Assembly (NCBI RefSeq): GCF_000150275.1
Contig: NW_002060944.1
Location: 375,614 to 439,613, forward strand
DNA: 64,000 nucleotides
Source of the DNA: Trichoplax adhaerens
Lineage: Eukaryota > Animalia > Placozoa
Direction: 5' to 3'
Shown here in pieces: positions 1,090 through 51,251 of the stretch. Within the stretch, counting starts at the first letter, position 1. Each line of letters opens with the position of its first letter. The translations under genes and the position numbers were made by a program. The notes beneath the pieces are model-generated. The model ran no database searches, was not told the origin of the DNA, and saw only the letters and a list, made by a program, of their open reading frames with translations.

Positions 1090-4000
1090 GTAAAACGCGT
1101 ATCTATAAAATGATTTTAAAACCAATTTTCTTATTAGATAGGTCTCAAATCATTTGCCTTATGATTCTGTGAAATAGTTGCTTATTAGAATGATAATTAA
1201 TCAAGAAATATTCAGAGTTAGCTTTACAGAATCATTTAAATTAATATTATAATTAAGGGTTGGTGATTCATGCACACGGTTGATATTTTCTCACAATTTC
1301 AGTTCTGAAAATAAAGTAGTTATGGTATCTGATCACAAGACCAACTATTGAGACTAGAGTCTTTGTCTTATTGTATTTCCCTCAATTTCCGCTGTAAATA
1401 TTTTTATTGAATTTAATATAAAAAAATTAGGGGAATTGTATGATCATTTTTATTTACTAAGGTAAGGTGCTTTATTGAATGCAAAAATATCGATCTAAAT
1501 TATACTCCTGTTACATTAGTCAGGCGATATGACTTAGAAATAGCTTCTTTATATTAGAGTTTTTACTTATATGTATTCTAGAAAATCTGTCCATTCAAAT
1601 TAAAATTGGGATTTGAAGGTTATGATTGCTATCACTCAATACTATTGAAATCCGTTAGCCTATGACAAGAATGAGTTATTTTCTTGCGATTATAGTTTAA
1701 AAAAGTCATTACTTAATCTGATTAAAGATGTGTTTATCTGCAGACAAATTTACGGCACAAAAATCTACATGATTACATGGAAACACTACTCTTATTCGTT
1801 TCGTATCAAATTTTAATGATGGTTATTGTAGTTTAATAGTTTAAATTTGCGTGATTTCTCATTTTTTAAATATTCCAAATTTATGCATCTCAGAAATTGA
1901 TAATATTTATCTGCCGTTACTTTAGACGTTACATCTGCTGTGTTCCTGCTATATTTAGTAGTTTGATATAGAATGTTGGTATTATTAGATAAATTAAATA
2001 CTGTGCACCCATACCGTACGAAAAAAGCTTTTTTCGAACATCAATTTTATATGCAACTTTGGAATTTGCAAGAGTAGAACAATGTTAATACAAGCTGTAT
2101 AAAAGTAGCTTTTTTGCAACATAGTAAGATATTTATTATTTGCTATTACAACTACAAGATGAATAATAATTGTTGCTCTGAAAATATCAGAACTATATTC
2201 ACTTAGTTACAGATCTAGAATTCGCTTGCATTCGCAACATAATTGTTACGATAAATTATTAAAAATGTTTACGCCGTCAATATCAATTTCTAGTTTTTCT
2301 AAAAGTGATATGATGCAAAACGGATGATAGCGTGATACATTGCGGTGCACACTTGATGCTATTGTGGGGAGAAGGGTTAACCCTTCAAACGCATCAGGTG
2401 CATATATTAAATTAAATTGATTAAGTTTAAAATAAATAATGATCAAGCGAGATTACGTGTTTATCGGCATTTGCAGTAAAACTGCCGAACATTCTTGCGA
2501 TCGTTTTTTCTTTATTACGTATCGGAGTGAATTTTTACTGTATTCCATGATTTATAAACCAATATCTGATCAATTAGTTATCTTCTCTCGGTTGAAATGG
2601 CTTTCATAATGCTGTTCCGATCTAATATTAGAAAGCTACTATTTTCATAATAAATGCTAAGGTTATAATCTGTTTCTTGTTAATAGTTATTATTAAGAAT
2701 CTTTGAAATATTCATTGTTGTTTCTTTCAAAGTTAATCAATGCGGTACGGTAAATTGCTATTTCCATAACAATATCTGAAGCATTTTTTATTTTTCTTTT
2801 AAACATAAATAACATACTATTTAAAAATCGTTTATAGCTAGCAAAATTAAGTTATCTTGCATTGAATCAATATGATAATTCTAATACAATAGCGATAAGA
2901 TTTACTCTGCAGTGTTATAAAATATCAATATATACTGGTAACGAGAGCCCATTAGCCGTATTTAAATTTAAAATTTAATTTATTTTAATTACGACTTTAA
3001 CTTTATAACTACTAACTGCTTCAGTTACAGCTGTTCCAAATGTACTTATATCATATCAAAATTTTGTATACTATACTGGCATAATTCTTCTACTAGTAAC
3101 GTTATAGCTATCAAAGTAGTATCTTTAAAAGTAATAGCACATTATGTCTTCTACATTAATAATTTTAATTAGTAGCATCACTTCATTATCTACACAATTC
3201 TCAAGTGTACTTCCATTTCCGTTACTTATAATTCTTGATTATCTTATGGCAAGTAAAATGAGTACATTCAAATAATATCCAATAATAAGGCAATGATAAT
3301 CTAAGTTAATAATTGATAATGCTCGTACTCCAAATTTTGCTGTAATGCCTTCCAAATAATCCTAATATTAGTATATAGCTCTAGCATATAATTTCTAAAT
3401 CAATTTTCATACTCGTACTGTTAGCGTACTAGCCCAAACCCATGCTTTCAGAATACTTGGGAAATCGCAATAACAACTGCATTACGGTACTCTATTCCTA
3501 CCATTACTGGTGTAATTATAGCATAGAATAGGTTTCTAGATTTTACTGTAATTATTTGGAGGTATCCTTGTAATGTGTTTTATTTGCCTTGAGGTTTTAC
3601 TCCGGCGTAACTCTTCTATGAATTTAGTATTTAAACCATCGATTGACAAATTTTAATGGAAAATTAATTTCTGCAGACACGCATTATCATACTAACTGAA
3701 TTTAATGCTTTAACTATTCAATTTTATTACCTTAATATTGTCAGGATTAATCGTTTCTCTTCCAAATCAAACAGTAAGGAAAATCAAAAATAGTAAATCG
3801 AATGGGCAAACTAAAGCAGCATCGCAAATCATCAAATTAGGTAGTGTTACGAGCACTTGCCCATCCTAATCATTCTTTCAATAACTAAAATTAATTCGTT
3901 TATATAACATCTAATACTTGGTAAATGTAACTCTAATTAGTTTAGTCTTTAACTTGTTTCTTAATAAATATAACATCAAGCTCACGTAAAGAAATATAAC

Positions 4001-7000
4001 TTCTTAAAAATAGTTGTTCAAGACCGCTATACACATACAGCTAAAGGCAAATCAAAACTTAATGTAAAGACGGCAGTGAATGCAGATAGTTATTCGCCTG
4101 CTGCCAAAAGTGAAATTATGGCGGGTTGGTATAATAAAATATCCAAACATATAGATAATTTAATGACACTAATCAATAACTTTCAAGTATCATTTTTTCT
4201 ATCGCCACAGACATCATTACGTTAAGAGTACATTGTGAAATTTTTCATGCCGCAAATAATTGTTCCTCACGAGTTTAAGACGGAAAAATCGGCGTTTTGT
4301 TGGTATTGCAGCAAGGACTTATTTCCTTAAAATCTTTTTCAGGTTTGATGGCAAATAAAGCTTACTCTAAAATTCCTTCCCAAGCTGATAGAAGTAACAA
4401 AATGCAAGGTAGCAATAGGAAGTATATGCCTATGGCAATACCAAGATGTAATGGTAATCTTAAGATAGATTTAGAAGCTGACAGCTTTTCTTCTGAATTA
4501 ACTTATGGTATCCTTAGTATCTAACAAATATCTTTAAAAGTGTATCTTTTTGAATTATATTTTTCAATAATTAGAGATTGATTCGAGTTCAACAAGTAAC
4601 AGAAACTGTGGTTACAATTGCAGAAAATCAATCTCGCCCGGCAGCACTCTAGCTGCAACAGGACCGGATACCGATAGACTTATGTATCACAATCCATCTC
4701 TGAAAGCTCATGATTCTAGGCGCTTAGGCAGATAAAAATTTTAAATGAATTGAAATTCATTTGATTTTTTTGCTGGGTAATATTTAAATTAGCCGATAAC
4801 AATTCATTCTGTTTGATATTAGCGGATGGTAAAGTGATGGAAACGTTCCCTGTTCGTTTTTCTGTCTTGCCTCATAGGCAAGTTAACGGCAGATATCCGA
4901 ATTGCAATCAAAAATTTGTTTTAAGAGATTCAAGATTATTAGGTAAAAGCTACATCGCATTTTAAAGCCAAACATAGCGATGCACCATTTACTTACCTCG
5001 GAGTATTAATTTAGGTTCATATAGTCAAGGGGATAGGAAAGCAGCAACACCGAGGTCCAGTTGCTCCGCCGCTTCTCGAGGTAATACTAGGATGATACAC
5101 TATCCTAGACACGTTAGACCATCAGACTCATCAGGTAAGTTTTAATTGTCAAATATTTATATCAACGCCTTATATAGTTTCATATATGCTAAAACTTGCA
5201 AATTCTATTGCTTTTCTAGCTATATCTCTATCAGCTGATAGAAGGGTCGTGCCAAATCCTAAAAATCTTAATACTACATCCTTGGTGAACAAAGGGTTGA
5301 GTAACAACAATAGACAGTTCGACTTTCCCAAAAAATCTAATACTTCGGGTAGAATCAATTCATCGTTTCAAATGAGCTGTAGAAATCACATATATGTTTA
5401 ATTAAGTATACCTTACGAGCCTCTGTCATGTTAATTATAATTTTTAAAAATCAATCTTAACATCAGATGAAAGAATAAATTATCACAAGCGTGGACTTCA
5501 AAGAGAAATAATGCCTAGAGGTTAATTAATAAACTATTAGCTACAGATTCATAGACGACCGTGATTTTGCTAACCGATATCTGCGCTAATTTCTACTCAC
5601 TGGATGATGCTTTGCTAGATCCAAGGCTAAAAGCCAAGAGCAGTACTTATGCAGACTATAATAGTATTCGTCCTCAAAGTTGTCCGACCAAAATGGTAAC
5701 CAGCTCTGCAAATGTTATGGCTTGTAATAATTTGTCTGTTTCTCAATTAACTACGGAGTTGAAGTCTACAGGTAGGTTTCGCCTCTTTTGCAGAATTTAG
5801 TCGGAACCGCATTGCATCTATTTTGATTTTATCGCATGAATTAAATTAAGAACCTGTAACTAAGCTTATTCTGAATTTTGAATAATTTATAAACACAAAT
5901 TTTAACATACGATAGTAGATGGGCGTAATAGAAGTGAAAGTATAGCTTACCGTAATGTTCGAACACGAAATGTACCTACAGGTAAGACTGAAATTTATAA
6001 AGTAATCCATTTTCTTTATTAACGCAAAAACATGGCTTTGAGGAATTCCTTAGAGATGTCATTAGTTTAATAATTAATAAAATTCTAAAATATTTGATCC
6101 GACAGCATTGTCTTTCGCTAATAAAAACATAATTTTACTGATTATTTTAGATCCTCGCATTGCCTTAGGCTACACATCAAGTAATTCCGTTCATCCCAAA
6201 AATACATCAGACTCTAGTAATCCATTCACTGCCAAAAGCGGTAGTTTGATTATCGGTGTTGTTGAGTTGAGATGTCATTGCTAGAAACTTAAAGTGAATT
6301 AATGAGAGTTCACCTTTTATATTATTTGTCTGAGAATTCTAAATTAAAAAATTGCATCTTTACTGTAATGAATTGTGTATGATTGATTTTATTTACAAGC
6401 TGCAGCAGGCAATAATTCCGCTCATCTTGCTAAAACTACAAATACACAAGTTAGCAATATTCAGCCAACCTCTAGATCGAAGCTATGCAGTAAGATGAAG
6501 CAGCATTATACCTAATTACATTCTCTATCCGTGAACTTGATCTTAAATTTACGTCTGTTGATATTTAAGGCAACGATGAAAAGTATAAATTACCGAATTT
6601 AACTAAGGTACAGTTTGACGCTGCAGTTCATGATGATCAAGTGGGAGATCAGAATCAAGAGCCTAAAAAAGAGATTCCAACTAAACTCTCAGGTAATCAT
6701 TTATTAATAAATGATATTTTTCAGTTAACTATTGTAACTAGTTAATTGAATATGGCATCTCTTCTAGATGAAGAGGACTGTTTATATATAAAGACAGTAA
6801 ATCTGGGAATTAATAATAAAATATTTACTGGCAGTCATCATCAAAGTCATAGCACAAAGCTTCATGAATCGACAGGTAAGCTATTATCAATTGCAAGGAT
6901 CAATTATTTTGATTACAGCTATCAAGGGATTGCAAAAATTAAACGATTAAAGGTATCGTAGACCTCTAATTATACTGTATTTAAAATTTATTCATTTATA

Positions 7001-10000
7001 CCATACTATAATCATAGAAGGAAATATCAAAATATTGTTTTACGTTATTAATAATTAATTGGAAATATTACCAATGCCAATTAATGTAAATGGGTAATTC
7101 AAACTAAAAGTGAACGATAGTAAATCGAAATATACTCTAATCAATAATATTGGATTTAAAATATAATTAAACAGTGAATAGCAGTTGGCTAAATTAGTAC
7201 TAATGTTACCTCGATTTGTGTCCTGAAAAATCAAATTTAATCTTAAGTGTATATCTATCTTTACTGTATTCAGGTTATATGGGTTATCAAAGAGAAGATA
7301 TTAATAATAATAAAACACGCATACCCTTTATTAACGATGAAGACTCCATGAGCTTTAATCGTAACTCTAGTAGTCGACAATATAGGAATGATTTGCGATC
7401 GGCAAGTATAGGTAATGTATGACGCTATAATCACAGTTATGGTATGCTTTCGGTTTGTTATTTAAGCCCATTTGTTTCGATTTGAATTCATATGTAGCAA
7501 AGGCAAACCAAGAATGTAACCAAATCAAAGTCGATGCACTATCTGCTAAATCCTCTGAAAGTAAACTACTTCAACGGCGTTCAGAAATTAGTCCAATTTC
7601 ATATTTAATCATATATCAATAAGATATTTATAACGCTACTTTCCTTCAAATCTTACTTAGCCGATGTGACTCAAGATTGTAACGACAGAGCAGCCAGTAA
7701 GCTATCTTCTGAAAATACGCCAATCTTGGCTGAGAATGATAAAATATCTGATATTCATCATAGTGGTATGACCTGTATGATATTAAATAAAATAGAATTA
7801 GGCGTTACCAAATTTGCTTTTCCTCAATTTCAATCGATAAATAGCGAATGAAACAGATCATGAAAATCGATTAACCTCAGACCAGCAATCATTGAATAGT
7901 AAACTCTCATCGGTGTCGGAAAATAACCAATCAAATCTACAGCTCAGAGGTATAACATAGATTATTATCAATATTGGAGTTCTTAATAAATCATACTGAT
8001 CATTTCAATAATTGATTGTATCACTTTTTCGCTTATTTTCTAATGTACATGTGCTAATTTAGATCTCTGCTTTGCAAAAGCGGAAATATGTAGTGAAATT
8101 ACTAATCCTATCGTATCAGGTAGTAACTTCTCTGAGATCTGAAATTAGAATTATATCCCTTGGCAGTAATGAAAATAGCTCTACAAGATTATTTGATGAT
8201 TGATTACTTTATCGAATCAGATATCGCACTTATTCAACAATTAGGGTTTCACATCATCTTAATTGCCAGTCTAAGAAAATATAAGATTAAATACTAATGC
8301 TTAGTACTGTAAATTAATAAAGCCGGCTAAATATAGTAGTCTATATTTTAAAATGTGTAATACCCTACGGACTGAATTAGGAAGCAACAAATCTGAATTG
8401 AAAATCGATACTTTGGATAATAAGCAGGAAAATAATTCGGGTAAGAATTTATGAATCCTCTAAGAGTAGATCCATTCATTAATTAAGACTCTGCCACAAA
8501 ATGATTTCTAAAGGAGACAAGAATTTACGGAAAAAAGTGATTTTACCACTAAAGCAGCTGCGTTTTGGTGATAAAGGAGATAATTCAAGTCAGTTTCTAA
8601 TTATCTCCTAAGAGCTATACTTTTTTTTGCCTGATTTATGGAACTATGGAGTTTATTTGTATTTCAGTTCACAGCGATTGCCAAATACTCCAAAATGTAG
8701 ACAAGTCTTACAGATCTGAGCATCAGTCTCAAAATTCCTTGTCAATTATCAAATGTTCAGGTAGCTACGATCAAGACTCTACAAATAATGAAGTCGAAAT
8801 ACAGCAAGATAGAGATGACGGAACTTCTTCACTTACTGGTATATTCTTATGTATCAAAATGGATCAGTCCTGCAATTATATAACTGGATGCAATGAAAAC
8901 ATTTATCTTTTCTTAATAGTTCCAAGTTCAAACGACCAGGGTGAAAACATAACTAGTGAGCCATCTCGTCCGGTGTTCGAAAAATCGGAGCTTTCAGATG
9001 CAGCTGCAATAGGTAGATATCGAGTTATTTAATATTTTCGACAAATGTCTACCTTTTACTGATTTATAAAATCACGAATTTACTTGGAATGGAGTCTTGA
9101 CAACGTAGCAAATTCACACACACTGTATAGTACTGTGTTTATGGAATAATGGATTTAGTTGAAATTCCCCCGATAATTTTACATTTCGTTGTAATAACTA
9201 CTATATATCATAGATCAGAAGATTTTTAATGCGAAACAAATTGAAATTGTGTAATTGTAACCTACATGTATGATGTCCTACTCATTTTAAGCAAAAAGCT
9301 AATTAACTTACCGGTAACTTTTAAATAATAATACAGAGGGTATGGAGGAAAAACTTGAAAAGGAGGGCCAAGTATTAGGTAAATAATCGACGAAATTAAT
9401 ACCCTGGTATAATAAAGTCTTATCCGTTCTTTCCTGATTTCCTTGTAATTGGCTATTTTAAACTTTAATAAATCCTTTAGGAATTACGAATACGTCGGAA
9501 AAGTCTGTAATCCTGGAGGATAGGCTAGAAATTTCAGGTAATGCACAGCAGTCGGTAGCATTCGTTTCTTACTGTATATGCTTATTAATTTTTTATTATA
9601 TCGATTAATATAAACAAAAAAATATCAACTACTCTATATTATTAGATAATACTATAATGGATGCAGTTCGGAGTGAAATGGGCAAATCTGATAATTCTTT
9701 CAAGGCTGAAAATAAATTAGGGGTTACAGGTAATGTTTAAGCAATTGCCGGTGCAAATATAACTTTAGTAATTTTGCCATAATTAAGGTATAGAAATTTT
9801 TGTCTATGTGATAGTAGAAAATGAATCTCAAGAATATTTAGCTAGAAAAACTGATATCACAAGCCTTTAGTAAATCTAGTTATCTAATTAATGATTTACA
9901 AAATTGTGCTAGTTACTATCACAATGATTTACGAAATTGTTAATTTCATTAAATTTAAAGTGATTACTAACTAATTTATCGGTTTAATGTTGACAATTAA

Positions 10001-13000
10001 TTTTGAATGTTAGAAGAAGAGAATCATGATCAGCATATAGACAATAAAAAAGTTCAAAGCGAAGGTAATAAGTGAAGAAAATCATGGTAACGAACCGTTG
10101 TTAGACAAAATAAGAGCGGAATATTCTCCTATGATTATATTTATTGATCTAATCCTATTGATTTAACGATGGAATAAGAGTCTGAAGACAGATTCTAGAT
10201 ATTAAAAATATTTAATATCCTAGTGGTAAACTAAATGTTATTGTAATTATTTCATTGAGCCCAACGTAACTTAACGACGATACTTTCATAAATACAGGTA
10301 TAGATCAGATAGAGATGCGAACATCCAACAATTCTTGTGATGCTTATCATGGACCAAACATTACAGGTTATACCCTGATTATTATCGTTTTATTCGCTTT
10401 TGGATAATTTCTTCACTATCAAAATATCTTATGCCTCTTTGAATTATAAAAAATGAATTTCAAGAGTCTGGTCTCAGGGAAAAGAATAACGAAGAATTTA
10501 AATTAACAGATGAATTTGGATGCTCAGGTACAGTACAGTACGATTATATGTACATGAATTCCGAGCATACAACCACTTTTTAACTTAAAATATACTAACG
10601 TTAACATTAAAACAGAAAGTGAAATGGATGTTGTGAATGCAAAGGGTACTCAAAGTAAAGGAATCTCAAAATTGTATGAGATCTTGCTAAATTTCAATTT
10701 AATTTAGCGTTATTACTCTGCTTTATTTCTAGAAATAACGCAAGAGAACAGCCGCGCTGGTAAAATGAACAGATATGTTCTAGGAAAGGGTAAATTAGAT
10801 CAAAAGTGTTTTCTTTCAAAATGAAATCTACTAGTCTCAGTACACCATGCTAAAAGACATCTAGCTTATATTAAAGTTTAAATTACGGGAATTATTTTAC
10901 GGTAATTCTAAGATACGATACCTGATGGTAGTGAAACCAGCAGAAAAGATTTACTTAGCATAAGGCAAGATAACTCAAGGAAAAAGACATATTCTGGTAG
11001 GTCCTATCAGGCATTTCAGAGCAAAACAAAGTGGTATGGTATTACTTTTAATATTTAATTAGAATCTAATATAACTACTGTAGAGCCCTAAAATATAACG
11101 GTATCGCAAAAGATACGATCATGGAAGTTTATAAGCTGTTCGATCTTCAGATTAGGAAATAAGCTTTAGCAACATTATTTACTACTAGGTCTTCAGATTA
11201 GCAAATAAGTTATGGCTACGATAATTACGATTAGATCTTTGAATAAGTAAAAAGTTTTAGCTATATTAGTTGAATTGAAAGCTTTCATTACCATCAGATA
11301 TCAAGTATATCTGAAATCGGGCTCATTGATAATGTAGCCTTCTGCTATAACAATAGTAGGGCATGAAGATCGTATTACCAGTACAATATTAGAAGAGAAA
11401 AGAATAGAAATAGAAACTTCTACCGAAACTGTCATTAATGATATTAAAATTATCAGTAAGTTGTGTTAGAATATACGTTCGCATGCTCAAAGTCAATTAT
11501 AAAACATACTGCTTCTAACAAACTAGAGAAAGAACCTGAAGATTTAAATTCAAAATTTACGAAAAACGAAAGCTTAAGAATAGAATTAAATATAAATAAT
11601 TCTACATCTTCTAGTAAGTCGAAAACAAATATGACTGTAAGCATAACTAAAAATCACAGCATCTTCCTGCCAGCGAATAAAATTTGTATAAATTTATTCT
11701 TAAATATTCTGAATTATTCTTAAAATCAGCTGCGAGTAACGAACTTGAGCTTAAAATTAGCAATAAACCTAAATGGAATGGTAATTAGCTCAAATAATGC
11801 ACAAGTTTGCCCTAAGATTCCGTTGAAAAGAATCACTTCTCATATAATTCTAGATTTTTGTTCAAATAATCAAACCTTTTCCAAATTAGATAAGCATGAA
11901 CGAGATGACATTATTGAATCTGGAAATAACAGTATAATAGGACAGATTTATAATAATATTTCAATTGATGTTAAATATTTGAAGTTAGAATGCTATACCG
12001 TATGCAAAATATTGATATAATTTTAAATAACGGCTTCATATTTTTTATAACCCATAATATCAGAACTAGTGATTAAGTCATTCATCATTTAGCCCGTAGT
12101 GGGTGATGTTACCAAATTTTCATCTTACTTCACGTAGTAGATAAAATTTCTAATGGATCTCTAGCATTTAGCTTGTTTTATCGATTTAATACAGAACAAA
12201 AGTATGCTTCACCAACTGCAAATGCACAAAAATTACCTAAACAAGAAGAAAATTTATACGAAAGACAGAGTGATCGCGATGAATCCCCAATACATCCAAA
12301 TATCGCAAATTCTGGTGAAGTCTTAGAATTTAATGATGTGCATATGCTCAAAAAATTAATTCATATGTTTGTCAACTCTATTTGATATTTAGATATTCAA
12401 TATACCAATATGAAATGTCCTGCATTAGGTAAAAATGAAGCTAATCACGTTATTCGCATAGGTTTTGCTGCAATATATCAGTTCGATAAAACAAATGTTA
12501 ATGAAGAGTAATCGATTTAATAGATACATTTACTGGATGTATTTCGGTAGCAGAAATGTCTAGCAAAGACTGTAACAGCTGCAATATAGGTATAAAAGCT
12601 CTATTTTGAATATTTATTAATTTTAATACATCAATTTGAAACATGAATTAGGCCAGGTCATTAACCTTCTTACAAAATTTCAAATTATCACTGTTTTGCC
12701 TTTTCAATAATTTACTTTATAAATGTTTTTCTCAAGTGCTTCGTTCCAGATCTCTAGTAAGTCGAAATTCTGGAACTTTGGTTGTCATTAAAAAGTCAAG
12801 AAAAATCGCCATAGCTTTAGACAACTCAAGAATGATTATAGGCCTACAAAACTATGGTACGATATACATCTAATTCAATATATTGATCTATAAAGAATAC
12901 TTGGACGTATCTAATGCAAAGTTAGATTAGTTGATAACAGTTTTGTTCATGTGAAAAGTATTTAGTTATAGTGATATAATTAGTGAAATTATCTGTTATT

Positions 13001-16000
13001 TAACCATCAATTAATTATATGGTCAAAATTTAAGGCATATTTACTAAATATCATACTAAACGTAGAAATGACCGGTATTTCTTCAAGTAAAATTGCTATC
13101 GATGGCGAACCTGATAAGTTTGTTGAAAGCTCTAATTCAGCAAGTTAGTATATTCTAACGTTTATGCCGGCAGTTATTGTGCTGATGTTCATTGCAATAT
13201 TTGTAATACCTCCAGGACAGCATAAGCAAAAATACATACTAGTCATGTAGTAATATCTAATTCTCTTACTACCGGTAATTTTGAGCTTTCGTATCATTTC
13301 CAAAGCAGGAAACAGAAATTTCTTACATAGCTTTCAATTCACAATACATACTTTTCAATTTGTTGCATAGGTATATCTGAACAAAAGCCCATAATTATAC
13401 TGCGTTTTCTAATATTGTTATTTGAATTACTACTTTGCATACATTTGGACAAAGTTTTTCAAGTTTAAATATGCTACTTTTTGCAACCGTATCAGTTCAT
13501 ATAATCCAGATGCAATTGTCTATGATGCACATATCTCACGTGCATTCTTCATTGAGAAAGAAATATCAAACAAATTTCAAATTGTCTCATTATCCCAAAT
13601 GTTTTGAATATAGACCGTAGGAAAGGTTTTCCTAAGGCATACAGAATATTCGCAAATGCTGGATTGTTAATGAAAATATCTGTCTTAACCTTAGTAATAG
13701 TATTGTGATATACTGCAGTGATTAATATGACTAGACCTTTAAATCAGTCAATATATCCAATTTATTTTACTTAGAGAAAACTAGAAGTACTAAGGAGAAA
13801 CAAGATAGAGTCTAATCATTAATTCTACGATTTCCTAGCTCCCTCTTCCTGTGGCTTAATTTCCTCAGCCATTTTAAATATTGTCTATTTTATACATTTA
13901 CACTCAAATTCAAATTACAAATTTATGACCATTACACTATGTAAAGAATCAAATCTGAATCTGGATCATTAATACTAACGTTTTTATTGTATCAGAGATA
14001 AATACCATTACGTGAACATAACAGTTAGCAGTATTTAATTTCTTCAATCTAGGCAAGAAGAAGATTCAAATTGACAGCATTTTCTTTGAATCAGTAAAAA
14101 TGCAAAATCGACGTAATCGAATTACAAATTTATTAAGCTTACGGAGAAAGAATTCTAATAAAATGGATTACTCACAAAATTATTCGAATCAAACAATACG
14201 AGGTAATAATCGAAAATGATTGCAAATTATTTAAACTCTACGATAATGATTGACTATTACACAATGAATTATCTGGTTTTAGATGTGGTAATAAAGAAAG
14301 AAGAGAAGGATTTATTGCCAACTTCAAAGGATCGTAATAAGTCTGGAAGAAGTAATGAATTGCTTATTGCATCGTCAATTAGTCATGAATTAAAAGGTTA
14401 GTTCTTGTGTAGATTGGCAAGTGAGTGAGTATTTTCTAGTCTTTCTGCTCAATTTTTGCTTTCATATTATTATTAACTACTTCAACTTGTATTAAATCTG
14501 AATCCAGCTGTCAATAAAGCAAATATGCCGGCGCTTGAAAGCGAAAAAAAATTGATTAGTCAAGAAATTAAAAGTCCATTTTTACCACTGCAAGGCTGTA
14601 CTTCCAAAAATCATCAAATGAGAGAAATCTTTAATCAAGCTGGAATACAAATTGGATCACAATATTCTGGTAAATGGAGTATAATATTCATTTAGCCTAT
14701 TCAATTTATCAGAATGGTTATAAAAAAAAGTTACAGCTTTAATGCTTTGTCAATTGTACAATTTAGAGACGATAAAATGTGAGAAATTATCGTCATCGAA
14801 TCAACATAGTGATTTGAAGAAAAGAATAGACACAACTAATGACTTTAAAGGAATAAAAAGGAAGAATATTGCTGAAAATTTAGGTCTGAAGTACTTTTAT
14901 ATTCGAGTACCGACGTAGATTATAGACTTCTCAATAGTAGTAGAAGTTTCACTTGCATTTGCATAAAGAGAAATTTCAACCAATTTATTTTTTACATTTT
15001 TGCCTATGAGCAGAAAGAATGACTAAAAACCAATTTTTCGAGGGCCCAAGAAAGCAGAATGATCAACTATTTAGGACCAATGTGATAAAGAAAAGATTTC
15101 TAGGCCCTAATTCCTCGGATCAATGTTGCGATCTGAACTCGTCGTTACATACTTCTGACAATAAGGCAGAGCATCAATTATTTCTGAACGTACGCGAAAA
15201 ATATCACGTTAAGAAGACCATCCGAAAAGATTCGAAAGCAACCTTCGAAACACTAGATACATTGACAGTTTGTAACAGTCACAACAATGAATGTGTTAAG
15301 AAAAAATCTTTAACAAAGGCTATAAAAAAAGAATTAGATCTTGAAACTTGTTCAAGTCATGACGATTACGCAACAGAAGCTACGCCGGATCCAATAACTA
15401 AAGAACTAGAAATTAGAAGAAATAATGATCATCTTAACTGCTTAGGTGGTGCAAGGAAACTTTTGCTTACTTCCGCAGACGACATAATCACCTCAAAGGT
15501 GTTTAATGAAAGTAAGACTGGAATCATTGAAAAAAAGTCTCTAGCTGTAGTTTTGGAAGATCTATCGTCTGTAATGGGCAGCTGCTCCGAAGAGATTATT
15601 GAAACTTTAGCCAAAGCTTCGGAACAGCAATCGACAGAGTCATCAGATACTGCTAGCTATGAAATTAGTACGACAAGCAGTTGTATAAGTGCGCCTACTA
15701 ATAGACAGTTTAACGTTCCATTGCCCAAGCATTTGAATGGCAATGATCATGTTGAAGACTGCAGGCTAGATACAGATGCAAGCAACCAATTAGGACCTGA
15801 ATTAGCTCAAAGTGCAGAAGAAAAGGAAATGATTCTGTCTTCTACTCACTCGCTGTCTAATGAATTTTCCAAAAATGAAATATATGATACGTATTACGAT
15901 GATAGTAGCGATTCTACTATTTCAGATATTATGGATGAAATGGCAGAAAGCAGTAAAAATCTACTAGAAACAAGAGCGCTATATCGCAAGGCTGAGACAG

Positions 16001-19000
16001 AATCTTCCTCTACTGTCTCTGAGGATACACTATTAAATCTTCAAATAAAAAACGAAACTGATAGTAATATGGCAAAAGCGGATAAAATTCCGGCTATGAT
16101 GCCAGAATTAAAAGCTTGCAATCATCAACCTAAACAAAATACTACAATGCCATACATATCTGAATTACATGAGTATGAGGATGATGAAGCATGCAATACC
16201 GGTAATATGAAAATATACTATGTGAAGAAAAGTTGCCATAACTAGTTATATCATCTTGTTTGTAATTTTATTATGCCTCTTTTATTTCTATAGTTAATGT
16301 TTATTTTCTGTTTCTTAAGTACATTTAGTTCAGCAGAAGGAGTCGCTTGTTTCGAACTCATCAGCAGAAGTACTACTACAAGATATTGGTCAAATTGATG
16401 AAGCAAGAAATCGAGAATTACCGATACTGTCGGATGACAATGATGATTCGACAGTTTCAAGTAAGTTACTGAAAATGTTAATATTACCTTATTATTTCAT
16501 ATTGGAAGAATTTTACTGAAATGATAAATTAATCAGCTATTCGTATGTTCTTTCTGGTGTAAAGATCTTTCATTTGAAGTCTGCTCTCAACCAGGTAAAT
16601 CTCCTTCCACCAGTAATAGAGATATTTTATTTTAAGACTTTGATTTTCATTTTATGCAATTAGATCCAACGCCAGAAGGTAATCTTAGTCGAAGCCTATC
16701 GAGAGATAAAGGCATGCACGGTATATTGCAAGTAATTTTGATAAATATGTGTCGATAATACGTTAAAGAGGAGTTTTATATCAAAAGTTTCAATTTTGGC
16801 ATGCTGGACATTATAAATGATTAAAAATGTCGGATTAGCATAAATTTATTTTACCTTATATACTACAGATGATCGCATTAATGAAACGGTTAAGAAGGAA
16901 GATTCACTACGAAAAGAAATATCGAAAGAGACTACAAAAGCAGGTAAAAACGTTTTATACCTTAAGAATATTTTAGATTAGAATTTTGAACGCAGTCTGA
17001 CGATCCCTTTTTATTAGATGTAGGTGTTGCCGTCGAACTACATGATCACGACTACAGCAAAATAAACATATATCTATCAGGTAACAAAACTAAACAAACT
17101 CGTCTCCATTTGGTGTCTTAAAACATAAATACTACGTAATTTCTAGTACGATGAAAAGCATTAATCGAGAGATTTCAGTAGTATAGGAATATTTGTGGTA
17201 TCGCAAGTTGTGTTGATTCAAACTTTCTTATAATGTAATATACTAAACTAAGTTTTGAATAGATGCTAATTTTATTTTTCAGCCAATAAGGATGCTGACT
17301 TAGAAAGATTAGCTAAACTAAGAGGTTTGGATATTAATGATGTCATCGCTGCATATAGTATGACAGAACTGGCTTTAGAGGGAAAAAATAAAGCCAACGA
17401 CGAAGGTTAATCGAGGAAATGTATTAATAAATTGATTTAGGATTTCAGACATCTTCAACTGGAAAGGATTATAGAATTTTTAAATTTTAGCTGAATTCCT
17501 CAATTAAGTGCAAGATTTGATATTTAAATGATTTATTTTGCTATGTGTAAATAGTTAAAATCTTTCCTGAACGTTAATTGTATGATACCTAATGGCAGTG
17601 ATTCAGTAATTAGAATGAAATCACGATCATTGGCACTTGAATGCCGGAAAAGATTGAAAATCTAATTGCTAGTAATCACTTGTGCTGGTAATCAGTTGCG
17701 ATTGCTAGCATTAACAGCGATTTCATTCCCAATTTCTTAAAGTAGACAGATATAGCTAAGCTTACATATGTTCGTAATGATATTTCTTGTGCTTACTTAC
17801 ATAGCAAGATCAAATGTGTGCGATAGTGATCATCTATCTGAAAACATGCAAAAGGCTGGCATTTGCATTAAAGATGATAAAGGTATCATAACATCTTAAG
17901 AATAATACTTTTTAGCTTAATAGATGCTAGGCATGAAAAAAAAATTTGAAGAAACAAATCCTTTCAAAAGCTCCTCAGTTAAGTGATAAATTGATTTTAA
18001 GGTAGCTAAATTATTTCATTATAAAATTTCAGCTGCGATTGTTCGGTATCAAAGCGATGATATTTCTGACGATTCTTTCAGAACGTCCGATCTATATGCC
18101 CTTAAAAGTAAGTAATTTGATGATATTATCTGCAAAATAGCAAGACTTGATGAAAAATTACGCCATAAAATCCTGCAACTGCTTTTACGAAAATGATCAT
18201 ATTAAAATAAATAAATGAAGGTAGATATTTTTCATTTAAGCGATAATCTGTTCAATATCCAGCACATAACCGGCTTTATTTTTTATTTCTTGAAAACCAA
18301 AATATAATTCCTGAATAAGCTGAATAAATATTCAATATTATTAATAACTAAAATTGACTTGAGAACAAAATTCTGTATTGTATAAAAATGAAAGGCTAAA
18401 TCTCAGCTTGGATTAACTAATTATGCTAATTTTGAATAGAAATTTGAAAAAAACATTCATCCAAATAATTTCGAATATTCTGTGCATACCGTAGTATATG
18501 TTATTCGGATTTTGAAAAATTTGACTTGCAATCTTAATATCTAGATCTTATTCTATTTTAAGATATATGCTCATCAGATTCTTATAATTTCGTACACATT
18601 CATTTTAAATACTTTTAAATTTCGGAACTTGCAGTCGCTTAATGAATGCACTTGATAACTAATCAGACAATTGGAGGTCATATTATGACCATTTTAGTCT
18701 ATCCTCGTTTCAGTTACTGTAAGCTAGTTTTGCACTAATTTAATTTCTTAATTAGTATAGGCAAGTAATTGGTTGATGTTGATATAACTTTCATTCTAAT
18801 AATACCAGCTAATATCCTTCCTGATTGAAGAGATACTCATGATCTTGAAATCTACAGCACTTCAACAATTGCTTCATAAATTGTCAATGCTGTGACCTTA
18901 TGCTTTTCATCCACAAAATTCTTGATTTGCCATGTTTACTAGTAGACAATGCTCAAGAATCCAAATTCGTTTCTTTTAAACCGTATCCATCTTACAAAGC

Positions 19001-22000
19001 TACTGATACAAGTCCAAGTAAGCATACATGCAATAAGCAGGAAAGCATGATGCATTCGCGTAAAGGTATTATCATACGAGCCGCGTTAGGAAACATAAAA
19101 ATGTTACAGAATATTATAACTAAGTATATATTTGATAGAAATCTAGGGGCTAACTATTAATAAATTCTATCATTATCACAAATATTTGGAACAAATAGTG
19201 AAATTAAACGATCAACATGATACGATAAGTGCAAGCTGTTTGTTTAATCTTAAACACGAAGAAAGTCGGACGCCTTTACCTGCTAGTATGATTGCTTGTA
19301 TATATATATAATTATGAAGAAAACTACTAATTGTAGAGATTTGAATAAACCATAGATCGAAATCATTCGCTATTTTATTATATCATTTAACGAGCTGCTA
19401 ATTGCATTTATAAATGATAGATTACTTAAGTCAGGAAGAAGAATTGAAAGAAAATTTTTATCCACAAAGGAAATCGAAGGACCTAAATCATAAGACAAAC
19501 AGTAAAGATGCCAACGATTCTAAAGGCAAGAAGCAATTCGACTATCAAGTATTTTTAACCCGGTTTCTAATAATAATTTGCAAAAAATATGACGAGTGAG
19601 CTATAGTCAGATGGCTTCAATTTTGGATAGTGTAAAATTAATTATTTTACCGGCATACATCACTAGATTCTAACTTACTTTGAATTTAACCTTTTAAGAG
19701 CTTTACTATGACAACGTAACGTGCCTATCACTGTTTTTATTAATGAAATTTAACTACTCGATGCAGTATTTACGTGTAATTAGAAGCAACGATTGGGTTT
19801 GGAAGTTATGCGATGTTTTAAAAGTGATTTATACGAGATACTGCATCAAATGGAACTATACTTGAAGCTTAAATTCGTTCGGCATTGAAGATATTGCCTA
19901 ATGAAACAAAGAAAAGTTTTAAACAATAACTTTATACCCTTATTGATTAACTCGTGATGTTAACCAAATTGTCCATGTAACTTCAAAATTGTTATTAAAG
20001 TTATTTACGGATTTGATAGATTATCCATATTTTTCGACGATTTCCTGTCAGAATGGAAGTCAAAGTGCAGTAAAAGTTTACGATACACAGCCTAAAGCGC
20101 TTGATTCCAAGAACTCCGAAAAGGAAAGTGCTAATACATCTTATGGCGGAGGTATAGCGAATGGGATAATCTCTAATTGATGGCAGCTATTATTTTCAAT
20201 AAAATCAGCCGTGTGCAAGTGCTATAACGGGATTTCATTTGGCCAAATTGTATTATCTTTAATTAGTAATTATAAGACGTAGAACTTGTTGATTTACTCT
20301 GCATAGTTAGCGTTAGTAATTGCACTGGATAAATTATTTAATATTAGGAAATTTAGTATTATTACAGTACTTACTAGACAAGCTCGATATATTTAAGTCT
20401 TAACTGCCTTGAATCAAGCTAAATCTGGACAAATCTTGAATGACAGTTTATCTAGGATAAATATGGATGTTTGTTAATATTTTCGAATTACTACACTGCT
20501 ATTATTATATGTAGTAAAAGAATACATTTAATTTATCTAAATATATACCTGGAATATTTAGGTACTCCCTCATTACCATCATCAATCCGAGCGGTTAAAT
20601 CTGGAATACCAAAACCAGCAAGTTTGTTTTGTTCTGTGAAAAGATTCTATTCTACTAAATTTAAACATGTTTGTTTGCTTTTGAAACTTCACTCATTCAA
20701 TGTTCACAAAATTTATCAAATATTTACCTAACAGATTTCAACAAAAATCATGAAGTACTCTCTAATAATAAAGGTAAAGTAATGAAGTAGCTACTGCTTC
20801 CAGTTGTCGATAAAATGAGTAGACAATGTTCATGTTACATAGGAAAATTTTATCTCAAACCTACTCAATGTTTCGTAGAAGATTTGATTTTAAAAATACT
20901 TAACATCACTATTAGATGTAGATATATGCTCTTTATTGCACATTATGAGTTATAATATTAGAGTGGTAAAAATAAGCAAAAGTGGATCAACATTCACTTT
21001 TAGTGTTTCGAAGTCACAAAATCTAAATCTACATGCTATTTATTTGATAAGCTGCGGCAGTAGAAGTGATAAAGGATTACCGGCAGCAATTAGTTCCGGC
21101 ATTTAATGAAAGCAACAAAGATCAAACCAAAACCCAACAGCCTCAAAGTAGTGTCATTATTAAAAAAATTTAGATGTGTTACATCATTATTTTTAGAAAG
21201 TCAATACTGTTTTCACCTAACTTTTAACGATAGAAATCATAGTTCATCGTCCAAGGCCGATTTTGAAGCGCAGCAGAAGTGATCCTGTCGAAGATTCTGA
21301 TGCAATGCTAATCAACGGTACTATTCCAGCGCTAAAGCGTGATAAACGCGATAACTGGTCTGAAGATAATAGTAAACTTCTAAGTAAGCTGCACGTTTAA
21401 TCATTTATCAGGGGATTAAATAATTTCGACCAAAACATTTGTTTACTTATGCTTGTAATTATTAGCGGGCGATGCTGCAATAGTAAGCGAAAATAACCGG
21501 ATCAAGTCTAAGTCAAGAGGTAAAGAATTTTGTAATCTGGCATGACAGATTCTACTGTAGTTCTACAGATTGTCGTCAGATAAAACCATTATTAGTGATG
21601 AATAAGCTTTTACAGATTTAGTACGAGCAACTAAAAAGCTATATTAGAAAAGTTCTTGGCAGATACATTGTGCTTATTGAATAATAGAAGTTTAACATTT
21701 GCTAATGCGGTGCTGATAAAAAGATTTACGTAGGCTTAAATTAAGGAACTTAAACTAGTTGCTAGATTATTACACTGTTACTATCAATCGTTTGAGAACA
21801 TCCTTTTATTCATAGAAATTAATTAATTTGCTTTACGGTTAAAACATACCAAGGTAATGAAAATCTGTTGCTTACGGCCTAAATTGTCCATGTTACAGAT
21901 GTTAAAGTTGAAAAAGTCTGGTCACTAGCTGAAAAAAATTCTGTTTCCAATTACCAGGAGTTCTTGAAAACAGAAGGAAACGATATTGGAAAATTTTCAG

Positions 22001-25000
22001 GTCGAGGTCAATATTTTACTGAAATAACGATTTCAACACCTTTCTGTCACTGCTTTATATGGCATTGCAGTAAAATTAAAATAGTTGATGTTTGGATTTT
22101 ATAGGAGATACAACAACGTGGAGTAAGCTTGGTCGATTGGACAATACATTAAGAATGAGATTGATTCAACTGAGTGTATTCAAGTCTTCAGCTAATATTC
22201 CAGTCAGTTTGATTAGTATCCTGTGGCAAGAACATCCTTCGGTTGTGAGAAATGAAATTATGATAATGGAGAGGTATCATTTCGTTAAATACTACTGGGA
22301 AGATGGGAGGTGAGAAAGCGATGGCCAACAAATCTAGACGAAATTGCTTTGTATCTTCCATATTGTAAATGTAGAGTTACGATCAGAAAATACTAAGTTG
22401 GATTGTATCTGCTTACAGTATTATTAAAGCATTAGAAAACTGCCACTTTTAAATGAGAGGAATGTTCTAAATGCACTTACTGCCTTTTAAATGGCAGAAA
22501 ATATTCTAAATGTACTTACTGCATTACCAAATGTACGCTTTATTTTATTTTAAACGATACTTCATGTTAAAATAATTGTATATAACAATTAACTTACTAC
22601 AGAAAAAGTAATCGTGATTGATTCAAAGTTGACCGTTTGCTTTTTAGTATCTGATAGCAATCATAATTTAATGTATAGAATAGATCTGTAATTCTACTTT
22701 GATAAACTATTGATATGACTTTATATAGAGAATTTTGCAAAATTGATGCGGCTATAGTCGATGATCTTCGAGAGCTCCATCCGAACCCTAGCTACTCAAA
22801 TGAACTTTTAATTAATCGTTGTCAATTACGATTTGGTCGAGACTTGCGCATCATGGAAGACGATGGATATATGTACCAGCATATTATTGAACATGCTCTT
22901 ACAGCGAAGAAATCGTCTATCGCTATTCATTTATTGAATGATATTAAATGGATTTCTGCCAAGATTAAAGCTTGTGGAAATATTATGACATTACTAAAGG
23001 ACTATGCAAAGTGTGAAGAACAACTAGATTATATGGTAATTCTAAAATCTTTTACAAATATGTGACAGCACTAGTTGCTTTTCGAGTAGAAGAAACTGAA
23101 TCGCATTCATAGCAGTATCTAAACGAACGCTTGCTCATTATTATGCAACAGAAATCCATTGCTAATAGAGGCCAAATATTTACTTAAAATTTATAAAATT
23201 CAAGTAGTGATTTTAAAATTTCTGAATTTAAATATCGGTATGAAACTTAATATCTAAGCAGCACATAACTCTTTCTTTGTTACATAAATCCATTACTTCT
23301 TCGTAGTTTATTTGCTTTAATTAAGACATAAATTTTAATCAGTCGTCCCATCTAACAGAATTAATAACAGCACCTTAATGCTTGTCAGTACACTATTGCA
23401 CGGAGCGCAGACTAACTAATGAACTTTAAACCAACAAGCAAGTTTGATTATACTAATAGTTAATTATGGAGTATAAAAGTAAATAGTTAGTTCCTCCCGG
23501 CACCTAATGATTCTGATAGTACACTTATTCTATAATTTAAAATACTTCTATTTATTTCAGCAATGGCTAGAATTGCGTGATTTATGCCTTTTCTTCCGTC
23601 GACATGGTGCGTTTGTAAATGCTGCAAGTACGAACTTGATTCAATTCGTGCTTAATCATACCAGCGATGGTGCAACTCATAAAAGGGCAATAAAGGCTGC
23701 TTTAGAGTGTAAACGTGAAAATCATACATTATATTATTACCAATTAATGTAAGCTAATGTAGTGATGGATCTATCTAGAATTATTATCATGAAATTCACA
23801 GTTAAAATAGAATAATGCTTATACGATGGAAGTTATAACCTAATCTTTCATGTTAACATGATTCATTTTAAAGAGGGCGTGACTTTGAAAGGATCAATCC
23901 TGTTTGGCTGCAGTGCTTAGCACTACCAACTACACTTCAGGGCATGTCTATACATTTAAGATGCTCTAATCCTACACACACCAAATTTAGAGTTGCTCTA
24001 AGTGATGAAAGACAAACGAGAGTAAGTTTAATATTTTGATTTTTAATGATAATATGAATCACTTGTGAATGGTGCCGACGTTTATTCCAATTTTAATAAT
24101 CCTAAAAAATCTTCCATTAGGTTGTAGATTTTAATACGTTTCTTGAAAAATTTAAAACTGACTTAACTTGCCCCAGTAAAATATCTCCAAATGGTCAAAT
24201 TGTTGCCTTTGTAAGTGTAATCATTTTAGCTGTTCCGCTTATTTATGCATAAATATGTTAAGAGCAGCAAGTAAACCTCATAATTTTATATCCATTCATG
24301 TTTGCAAACTTTATTACATTTAATGTAATTGCAGCTCAGCTATGTTGTTTTAAAGATTTCTTTTATATATGTAAGTTTGCTCGTGAAATATACGTCAAGA
24401 TCTCATTTGCGTATCAGCAAAGCAAAACTTCAAAAATTGATTGACAAGATCTTACCTGAAACACATAGCTACATCTACAAACATTTAATTGCATATAACG
24501 GAAAATAGAATTGGCGATGAAGTACCTTATATTCCATGATTAGTATTTTAATAATTGCTTTTTTAAACATAGATGGATTCTACTTTTTCCTGGCAAGCTT
24601 GGCATATCGACAGAAAGCGCAATATACCATTTGTAATTAATGGGAAAGGAACAAACTCTTTGCATTGTTCCGAACTAGAATTTTCACCTGCACAGCAAAT
24701 TTCTCTGGTGTGCTGGATGAACCTGCATGTGGAAGTTAGTATTGAACGTCATCATAATTGATTCTAAGCGATATTTATATCGCCAAATGGGTAGAAAACT
24801 GTAGCTTTGCTAATATCAGAATAGAGACTGATATTGCCATTCCGTATTGCTGTATCCGTTATATTATTAACTTATAACTTATTATCCCAGTTTGTATCGA
24901 TGGAGATCATTTCATCTAGATATCGTTAGCATAAATGCAAAATAATTGTTACTAACATTCGTTCCTTGCACTCTTCTTTTTTATACAAGGTATGGTGTCT

Positions 25001-51118: not shown

Positions 51119-51179
51119 GATTGAAAAAATGAATTTGCCTCAACTTGAAGGTAGGCAACTTCTTCGCCAGCAAGATGGG

Positions 51180-51197
51180 TAGAAAAGAAGGAAGAAA
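51180..51197 (-). promoter_or_regulatory. Pyrimidine tract, candidate 5'TOP/TCT initiator of RPS26
   Basis: Minus strand reads tttcttccttcttttct about 60-80 nt upstream of the RPS26 ATG, as is typical of ribosomal protein genes. Confidence 0.6.
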
Positions 51198-51251
51198 CTA
51201 GTGCGGAGCCTCGTTGTAGAGTAGTGGTCACTACTGCGCATACTCTTGAAA

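Follow-up and report, generated by a model that had tools for sequence, protein, structure and literature searches.

Amyloid signaling built on the RHIM is found in vertebrates and in some other bilaterians (Branchiostoma, spiralians and, as cRHIM, insects), with a related form in fungi and bacteria. In mammals the RHIM core is followed by a C-terminal flank of the form x-x-N-x-[M/L], which sets an Asn three residues after the core Gly. Kamm et al. are also said to have described, in 2019, an expansion of Apaf-1 in placozoans. The core tetrad itself has been defined as (V/I)-Q-(V/I/L/C)-G (PMC13506858), and for the printed peptides of RIP1 (TIYNSTGIQIGA) and RIP3 (NIYNCSGVQVGD) the matching 12-residue part suffices for ThT-positive aggregation in vitro (PMC9918910). 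RHIM proteins of Branchiostoma and other invertebrates combine the motif with NACHT, death domains and repeats (Kajava et al. 2014, PMC4262963), and the fungal PP and bacterial BASS motifs sit at the NLR N-terminus and are matched by a copy at the effector C-terminus (PMC5485727, PMC13506858). RIPK1/2 were reported absent from Trichoplax sp. H2 (PMC6321704), cnidarians yielded no RIPK1 homologue (PMC12119088), and the literature we searched contained no paper discussing a RHIM in placozoans.

We compared these systems with a Trichoplax locus lying in a 64-kb stretch of DNA, the whole of which is called the window here. Read in frame 3 (14510-14668, plus strand), a candidate exon at 14508-14669 gives a stop-free, polar peptide with the C-terminal letters EIFNQAGIQIGSQYS (...MREIFNQAGIQIGSQYS), in which IQIG at 14645-14656 fits the RHIM core definition. 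The N-terminal flank I-x-N-x-x-G is present before the tetrad as well (EIFNQAG, vs. TIYNSTG in RIP1 and NIYNCSG in RIP3), and the 12-mer EIFNQAGIQIGS, which includes the preceding E and the following S, shares 7 of its 12 residues with RIP1 at the same spacing. A sequence-only reading of this DNA had quoted human RIPK1 and RIPK3 and claimed a spacing of I-x-N-x-x-G-I-Q-I-G identical to RIPK1; the quoted sequences are correct for the part that can be checked against the two printed peptides, and the spacing claim holds. So does its remark that the downstream N-x-M is missing: the core is followed by S-Q-Y-S, with Tyr at the position of the mammalian Asn, and then by the splice junction (Table 1), and neither plausible downstream exon supplies x-x-N-x-[M/L], with a splice to 14737 yielding ...SQYS-A-LMLCQLYN... 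and a splice to 15014 yielding ...SQYS-E-RMTK....

Table 1. Features of the Apaf-1-like locus and of the RHIM-like segment, in window coordinates
Feature	Position	Strand	Details
N-terminal helical exon (CARD of the sequence-only reading)	675-1089	+	best donor 1089, phase 1
Insert: long run of small, hydrophilic, non-repetitive exons, mostly phase 1-1	3745-22000	+	
Upstream phase 1-1 exon, same chain	14053-14202	+	codon score positive
Upstream neighbor, phase 1-1 exon	14283-14396	+	junction codon with RHIM-like exon G+CT = Ala
Candidate cassette exon, 162 nt, phase 1-1	14508-14669	+	RHIM-like segment at 3' end
I-F-N-Q-A-G-I-Q-I-G	14627-14656	+	corresponds to N-terminal half and core tetrad of RIPK1 RHIM
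Core IQIG	14645-14656	+	tetrad identical to RIPK1
S-Q-Y-S and first base of split codon	14657-14669	+	where a RHIM would have x-x-N-x-[ML]
Short intron, 67 nt, donor CTG/GTAAAT	14670-14736	+	alternative in-phase donor 14678/GTATAA
Downstream neighbor, phase 1-1 exon	14737-14883	+	alternative acceptor 14767, also phase 1
Large exon in 411-codon ORF 15010-16242	15014-16231	+	acidic, Ser/Thr-rich, no known domain
Apaf-1/Dark winged-helix exon	22105-22309	+	acceptor phase 1, fits insert chain; donor phase 2 as in both paralogues
APAF1_C helical-domain exon and C-terminal repeat exons	22706-28646	+	collinear with paralogue at C1413:~315.1-321.8 kb

Each described system resembles this locus in part. 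The segment is like the mammalian RIPK1/RIPK3 RHIM (PF12721) in its IQIG core, shared with RIPK1, its I-[YF]-N-x-x-G spacing, its 7 of 12 identities with RIP1 and its polar, domain-free context, but it has neither a PF12721 match nor the x-x-N-x-M/L half, and the Trichoplax protein has no attached kinase or death domain and carries the motif inside an insert of ~2,300 residues. As in the Branchiostoma and other invertebrate proteins, a RHIM-type segment occurs together with innate-immunity or cell-death modules, and in Trichoplax too its flanks are probably unstructured; the described RHIMs, however, were found by a calibrated profile (p < 0.01) at the usual CARD-type position (PMC4262963), whereas the Trichoplax segment fails the profile test, is single and lies deep inside a linker. 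With the fungal PP and bacterial BASS motifs it shares a GxQxG in an NLR/Apaf-like protein and the proposed logic of amyloid templating in cell-death signaling, but unlike PP, HRAM and BASS motifs it is internal, with no second copy in the window or, in a coding context, at the paralogue loci. Drosophila cRHIMs (Imd, PGRP-LC/LE, Pirk) are likewise divergent RHIM-like segments of non-vertebrate immune proteins that fit the mammalian consensus partially, although their consensus differs (VxxG type) and several pathway members carry one, against a single segment in Trichoplax.

The family model does not recognize the segment. Against the Pfam cut-off of 20 bits for the whole motif of 18-22 residues, three queries (the 53-aa exon, a cut-out of 21 aa and the complete 72-aa ORF) gave no PF12721 match at E <= 10 (HMMER filters drop weak matches), and in a six-frame scan of the genome, where the exon was not among the candidates, nothing reached 20 bits; the best match scored 16.8 bits, and all five of the weak matches listed fall within open frames of 14-34 codons. 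Some of these noise matches, such as QIGNYNYLVI and IQIGSDNY, agree with the C-terminal consensus. The partner that RHIM-type signaling would call for was equally elusive: neither the window nor the genome, as far as it was searched, yielded a further RHIM-like segment in a credible protein setting, no credible second site emerged among the 30 inspected of 159 genomic [IV]Q[IV]G-x-x-N matches, and no second GxQxG in a coding context was found in the window or the paralogue loci. Other N-x-x-G-[IV]-Q-[IV]-G matches were non-coding noise or lay within an apparent CUB-type domain, such as NATGIQIG on contig C1407, rejected because it falls in a 168-aa ORF that reads, by eye, as a CUB-type domain. 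Three clustered [IV]Q[IV]G-x-x-N sites (C1396:374.0-374.7 kb), apparently a tandem RHIM array, were rejected because they fall in three short ORFs (15-44 codons) and two different reading frames. A prediction of the exon peptide as a four-copy complex scored 0.01, which according to the tool is neither support nor counter-evidence.

The premises of the proposed RHIM stand (a probable exon, its symmetry, the missing nucleotide-binding domain (NBD), the N-terminal half and core), but family membership is not established, with PF12721 failing, the C-terminal half missing and no partner found. Because the match covers half a motif, the family model fails and the genome, as far as searched, offers no partner, we treat the candidate as a lead, not a demonstrated RHIM; the short hydrophobic GxQxG patch EIFNQAGIQIGS cannot be shown to belong to the RHIM family.

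How far the resemblance exceeds chance depends on how much of it is counted. Across its six frames the window has 3 copies of the core [IV]Q[IVLC]G, vs. 3.15 +/- 2 in random sequence, so that the tetrad alone is at chance level there. The segment's GxQxG is the sole one in any frame of the window, and I-x-N-x-x-G-[IVM]-Q-[IVM]-G occurs once in the genome (105.6 Mb, G+C 31%) and not at all in a reversed control, with ~0.6 occurrences of the full pattern expected in six frames by an estimate from base composition. A BLOSUM62 score of at least 38 against the RIP1 12-mer has a probability of 2.9e-8 per position, so that equally good matches are expected 7e-5 times in the 2,300-residue insert and ~0.15 times per proteome of an assumed 5.2 million residues, the latter figure being for one reference 12-mer, before allowing for several reference RHIMs and many windows. 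The resemblance exceeds chance only in part.

The gene around the segment is an Apaf-1-like paralogue that has apparently lost its nucleotide-binding domain. It resembles the Apaf-1, Dark and CED-4 scaffolds in that its winged-helix and APAF1_C helical domains precede a long stretch of C-terminal repeats; Pfam reports APAF1_C at E = 3.9e-7 (above cut-off) and Dark_WHD at E = 1e-4 (below cut-off), 15 exons including the winged-helix exon match a paralogue in order at 27-50% identity, and the APAF1_C exon has 33 genomic matches, this gene among them. It differs from those scaffolds in lacking NB-ARC and P-loop, in the ~18-21 kb of phase-1 exons between its N-terminal and winged-helix exons, and in an N-terminal domain and repeats that Pfam does not recognize. 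The absence of an NBD, already implied by the sequence-only reading, is upheld by our searches: no P-loop or Walker B motif occurs on the plus strand of 1-30000, and all 68 genomic matches to PF00931 fall outside contig C1413, where this gene and two of its paralogues lie. For these reasons we also rejected the idea that small exons in the window conceal an NB-ARC. The two paralogues on C1413 (A and B) are likewise NBD-less, and have a short linker. Pfam found no CARD on 669-1169, whereas paralogue A has a Pfam-detectable split CARD; eight C-terminal ORFs, despite their conservation with paralogue A, gave no Pfam WD40. A single-sequence AF2 model of the N-terminal exon had a pLDDT of 41, too low for use, and searches of PDB and the ESM Atlas with that exon returned nothing usable.

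We regard as moderately probable that the exon is a real piece of a disordered linker whose resemblance to a RHIM is fortuitous or convergent, and that it is not a dedicated amyloid switch. The RHIM-like stretch would lie at the 3' end of a small exon that is truly coding and belongs to a set of several dozen symmetric phase-1 exons; together these would encode a long, polar, probably disordered linker that occupies a phase-1 intron position of the Trichoplax Apaf-1-like gene. The likeness of the stretch to the RIPK1 RHIM would reflect chance or convergence within disordered sequence that evolves fast and is lineage-specific, and the exon would contribute to a flexible linker or scaffold, with the motif presumably having no amyloid function. 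Counting against this reading are a match far better than expected for one protein (7e-5 in 2,300 residues), its uniqueness in the genome, a gene of exactly the kind in which amyloid or death-fold oligomerization motifs occur, the in vitro aggregation of the matching part of RIP1 and RIP3, and the vacancy left by the missing NBD. Should the likeness be fortuitous, as we judge likelier, the segment is still of value for bringing to light its surroundings: an Apaf-1-like subfamily without an NBD, and a long insert of symmetric phase-1 exons that is missing from two paralogues.

Unlikely, yet the strongest of the alternatives, is a functional RHIM-like amyloid or beta-zipper motif of self-association. 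In this scenario, after a trigger, GIQIG of one copy of the protein would stack in register with that of another copy or with an unrecognized partner, clustering the N-terminal death-fold-like domain and replacing the lost NB-ARC oligomerization, and the process would be tuned by whether the symmetric exon is included or skipped. A protein without the usual NBD engine of oligomerization leaves a vacancy for another assembly mode, and the hypothesis of amyloid nucleation in place of NBD-driven oligomerization draws on several further observations: 7 of 12 identities and exact spacing to a RIP1 12-mer that aggregates by itself, a GxQxG common to the RHIM and the fungal PP motif (PMC5485727), a polar context in an exon without a Pfam domain, the precedent of Branchiostoma RHIMs in NLR-like and death-domain architectures (PMC4262963), and a match unique in the genome. 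Against it stand the failure of PF12721, the Tyr three residues past the core Gly, the missing partner motif, the reported absence of RIPK1/2 (PMC6321704), and the fact that insert and motif are both missing from the two paralogues. On these grounds the patch is a doubtful candidate for a functional amyloid motif, and a shade more doubtful is the fuller proposition of a working placozoan RHIM-type motif, on an alternatively includable exon in the giant linker of an ATPase-less Apaf-1-like protein, whose amyloid stacking would replace nucleotide-driven apoptosome assembly. If functional, the segment would date the motif back to the base of the animal tree, provide a concrete case of one oligomerization mode replacing another in a cell-death scaffold, and tie the NLR-amyloid logic of fungi and bacteria to a metazoan relative of Apaf-1.

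The preferred linker reading places the exon in the Apaf-1-like transcript, and we infer that it is transcribed and shares an mRNA with the Apaf-1-like exons. The insert is ~2,300 residues long, with the RHIM-like motif internal to it; its exons are polar, low in hydrophobic residues and free of Pfam domains, no internal repeats were found in it, and ORFs of at least 80 codons number 12 on the plus vs. 2 on the minus strand. A permissive GT-AG dynamic-programming path separated the strands weakly (exonic fraction 0.54-0.59 vs. 0.39-0.47 antisense), and we therefore used an unbiased splice-phase test, in which 13 of 21 insert ORFs with strong sites had phase (1,1), against 1 in 9 expected, an excess seen neither on the minus strand nor in the C-terminal part of the gene. 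The 411-codon ORF 15010-16242 must be coding, as an open frame of that length cannot be chance; its exon (15014-16231; acceptor phase 1, codon score +59.8 bits, single copy in the genome) is uncertain at its 3' end, with phase-1 donors at 16201 and 16231. Protein searches, in collections that exclude this genome and near ones, found no relatives of the 411-aa ORF, and the lone match in an exhaustive representative search, a low-complexity, 3,842-aa bacterial repeat protein, was rejected as spurious.

Alternatively, the phase-1 run could be a separate gene of the same orientation nested in a 21-kb intron of the Apaf-1-like gene, which would put the motif in a disordered protein unrelated to death-fold or Apaf-1-like proteins. 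In favor of this, paralogues A and B, where CARD and winged-helix exon lie only ~0.1-4.4 kb apart, showed nothing that corresponds to the insert, no homologues or paralogues of the insert were found, and intron phase, which is 1 in the insert, becomes mostly 0 toward the C-terminal end of the gene. However, phase 1 is common to the donor of the N-terminal exon, to the insert exons and to the acceptor of the winged-helix exon, so that one continuous frame is possible, and no other death-fold exon was found near the winged-helix exon; we consider a nested gene improbable.

The candidate exon itself is probably real. It is bounded by AG at 14506-14507 and GT at 14670-14671, and the best acceptor and best donor of ORF 14477-14692, picked regardless of phase, are 14508 and 14669, both in phase 1, which bears out the symmetric 162-nt exon of the sequence-only reading. 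Its absence from the 60-aa ORF list, which that reading had also pointed out, is explained by an ORF of only 56 aa counted from ATG. The skipping switch proposed there fares less well: the phase does permit skipping, but trivially, since nearly every insert exon has the same phase. The exon is single copy in the genome. Searched exon by exon, as throughout, it found nothing at E <= 10 in PDB and nothing usable among ESM Atlas look-alikes, and with the 411-aa ORF it found nothing in a word-index protein search or in metagenome scans; the blank protein searches carry little weight, as the collections omit this genome and its neighbors.

Least probable of all, and very unlikely, is that the exon enters no mature mRNA, as intronic sequence or a decayed or never-used pseudo-exon whose peptide is not made: it has no protein match in databases that exclude this genome and its near relatives, open frames of 54 codons are nothing unusual in such AT-rich DNA (the plus strand of the window has 134 of at least 50 codons), even the antisense strand is 39-47% exonic on the permissive GT-AG path, and the acceptor at 14508 is moderate at a score of just 3.0, but its codon log-odds of +6.45 bits lie well outside the antisense null (mean -4.1 for antisense ORFs, 0 of 25 reaching +6.45, vs. 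3.5 for true exon windows), both best splice sites are in phase 1 as in 13 of 21 neighbors, the A-rich exon alternates in base composition with T-rich short introns on either side, and it lies 345 nt upstream of the exon in the 411-codon coding ORF.

Window positions 14510-14668 on the plus strand are stop-free and encode a 53-residue polar peptide with the C-terminal end ...MREIFNQAGIQIGSQYS, flanked by an AG just before 14508 and GTAAAT just after 14669, so that the exon measures 162 nt with one split codon base at each end. We scored all AG and GT dinucleotides in the enclosing stop-to-stop ORF (14477-14692) against consensus and kept the top one of each with phase disregarded; this returned 14508 and 14669, each in phase 1, in agreement with the exon coordinates and translation proposed in an earlier sequence-only reading. 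Using a codon log-odds model trained on the window's homology-supported or very long ORFs vs. chance ORFs, we obtained +6.45 bits for the exon, compared with a mean of 3.5 (sd 4.4) for 53-codon windows of true exons (leave-one-out) and -4.1 (sd 3.8) for antisense ORFs of at least 53 codons, none of which (0 of 25) scored as high. Four neighbouring exons also score positively, and an exon beginning 345 nt downstream lies in a 411-codon ORF, which chance cannot explain. Across region 3700-22000, ORFs of at least 80 codons number 12 on the plus strand vs. 2 on the minus strand, and phase (1,1) is found in 13 of 21 plus-strand ORFs with strong phase-blind sites (1 in 9 expected), with 5 minus-strand ORFs passing the same thresholds and showing no phase bias; in the conserved C-terminal part of the gene, phase (0,0) predominates. 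Base composition also differs: A makes up 0.38-0.45 and T 0.25-0.29 of these A-rich exons, and the short introns of 67-130 nt are T-richer (0.34-0.45). Codon usage, strand bias, splice phase and base composition, four independent lines of evidence, indicate that the candidate exon is probably genuine.

The sequence-only reading had described a RIPK1-like RHIM amyloid motif at the 3' end of this exon. RIP1 (TIYNSTGIQIGA) and RIP3 (NIYNCSGVQVGD) peptides have been reported, with ThT-positive aggregates obtained from 12-mers of both and not from bare tetrapeptides (PMC9918910). The spacing of the Trichoplax 12-mer, EIFNQAGIQIGS, is that of RIP1, as that reading had maintained, and the two peptides agree at 7 of 12 positions (BLOSUM62 score 38). 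Given the amino-acid frequencies of the window's coding exons, a score of at least 38 against the RIP1 12-mer has a probability of 2.9e-8 per position, corresponding to 7e-5 expected equally good matches per 2,300-residue insert and ~0.15 per proteome (assuming 5.2 million residues). In the genome searched (105.6 Mb, 1,414 contigs, ~31% G+C), I-x-N-x-x-G-[IVM]-Q-[IVM]-G occurs once. Relaxing the pattern to N-x-x-G-[IVM]-Q-[IVM]-G gives 13 sites, the remaining ones being rejected as RHIMs because they lie in short non-coding frames or an apparent CUB-type domain. For the core [IV]Q[IVLC]G alone, regardless of flanks, we counted 3 sites across all six frames of the window vs. 3.15 expected. The resemblance is real and improbable for this single protein, but a single match of this kind is unsurprising once a whole proteome, several reference RHIMs and the very many windows scanned are taken into account.

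A recent review describes the RHIM as an 18-20-residue segment built around a (V/I)-Q-(V/I/L/C)-G core (PMC13506858). The Trichoplax segment has both this core tetrad and the N-terminal flank, and its resemblance to a RHIM goes that far; it does not extend to the Pfam profile or to the C-terminal half. PF12721 (22 positions, cut-off 20 bits), the profile that the sequence-only reading had put forward as a check, gave no match on the exon, a 21-aa cut-out or the whole ORF, where filters conceal weak matches, and scanning all six frames genome-wide gave only five matches, which score 14-16.8 bits and fall in open frames 14-34 codons long; the candidate exon is not among them. The C-terminal half of a RHIM reads x-x-N-x-M/L. 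Here the IQIG core is followed by S-Q-Y-S and then the splice junction, and neither downstream exon restores that half (...SQYS-A-LMLCQLYN... on joining to 14737, ...SQYS-E-RMTK... on joining to 15014), consistent with the missing N-x-M noted earlier. A Y-N pair lies nine residues on, across the splice junction, and is accorded no weight.

Amyloid signalling requires matching motifs. We found no second GxQxG in any frame of the window or in coding context at the paralogue loci, and no credible partner site among the 30 of 159 [IV]Q[IV]G-x-x-N matches inspected; together with the PF12721 scan, the search for partner RHIM proteins proposed in the sequence-only reading yielded none. A cluster of VQIGDLN, VQIGNLN and IQIGDFN within 650 bp (C1396:374051-374701, plus strand) was rejected, as the sites, spread over three short ORFs in two reading frames, suggest tandemly repeated DNA that has decayed rather than a protein motif array. 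RIPK1/2 are reportedly absent from Trichoplax sp. H2 (PMC6321704), and RIPK1 homologues were not found in cnidarians (PMC12119088). On balance, we lean towards a real disordered-linker exon whose RHIM resemblance is fortuitous or convergent, with no dedicated amyloid role. A functional RHIM-like self-association motif has precedents in Branchiostoma, where RHIMs occur fused to NACHT, death and repeat domains (PMC4262963), and in the fungal PP motif, which has GxQxG in common with the RHIM (PMC5485727), but no matching partner motif was found and we consider this reading unlikely, at perhaps less than half the weight of the linker.

The surrounding gene contains Apaf-1-like domains, and its 15 exons at 22089-28646 are collinear (identity 27-50%) with those of a paralogue (A) that lies on the same contig (C1413), ~60 kb upstream, with a second, more distant paralogue (B) still further upstream. 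P-loop, Walker B and GLPLA motifs are lacking on the plus strand of window 1-30000, none of 68 genomic NB-ARC matches falls on this contig, and paralogues A and B likewise have no NB-ARC (Pfam) or P-loop, so the three genes look like a small Apaf-1-like subfamily without an NBD. In the two paralogues, CARD (Pfam E = 4.8e-5 in A, weak in B) and winged-helix exons are spaced 0.1-4.4 kb apart, placing CARD almost directly against the winged-helix exon in 2 of these 3 genes. Pfam detects no CARD in the N-terminal exon of the window gene, for which a single-sequence structure model was of poor quality. The C-terminal "WD40" exons (22706-28646, plus strand) have no Pfam WD40 match at E <= 1 and are conserved exon-by-exon with a paralogue; they may fold as a highly divergent propeller or as another type of repeat.

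Phase 1 is shared by the top donor of the N-terminal exon (1089), the exons of the insert and the acceptor of the winged-helix exon (22105), making a single continuous frame possible. The candidate exon is symmetric, as had been claimed, and like the other insert exons could be skipped in any subset, judging from phase. Paralogues A and B have no counterpart of the insert, which has no internal repeats, and protein and genome searches, run exon by exon, found no relatives, nor did the 411-codon ORF have any among 1.84 billion representative proteins, although these databases may omit this or very near genomes. Blank protein searches are therefore uninformative on annotation or expression. That the insert is a gene of its own, nested at this locus, seems improbable; this reading cuts across the others and would take away the Apaf-1 context. 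We find it slightly less probable still that the candidate exon is not expressed.

Features of the window and related loci
Feature	Location	Strand	Description
Insert	window 3745-22000	+	long series of small, hydrophilic, non-repetitive exons
411-codon ORF	window 15010-16242	+	acidic, Ser/Thr-rich, single copy; no Pfam domain except sub-threshold UBA_2 (E = 0.019)
Winged-helix domain (Apaf-1/Dark)	window 22105-22309	+	E = 1e-4
APAF1_C ORF	window 22706-23062		E = 3.9e-7
Apaf-1-like paralogues	window 675-28646 (+); C1413:~299.9-321.8 kb (A, L027-L029); C1413:~251.3-259 kb (B, L033)		common winged-helix, APAF1_C and C-terminal repeat exons
455-codon ORF	window 38197-39561	-	TPR_12/TPR_10-rich, E = 1.8e-66; N-terminus MGNQQ
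MADF DNA-binding domain ORF	window 46556-46954	-	E = 2.7e-20; the adjoining 265-codon ORF matches no Pfam family
Ribosomal protein S26e exon	window 50413-50625	-	E = 6.7e-29
G+C-richer repeat	window ~51100-51600; C1413:~297.9-299.7 kb, ~239.0-240.4 kb (L027, L032)		...CTVQYSTVQY... runs in several frames
Multi-exon gene	window 53500-62300	-	many 50-100-codon exons with similar Leu/Ser-rich repeats; no Pfam match

Elsewhere in the window, the 455-codon ORF may encode an N-myristoylated member of the TPR proteins that have expanded in placozoans, and the repeats of the multi-exon gene, by eye, resemble stereocilin or mesothelin-type repeats. The G+C-richer repeat, which recurs close to each of the three Apaf-1-like paralogues, probably represents a satellite or the remains of a mobile element.
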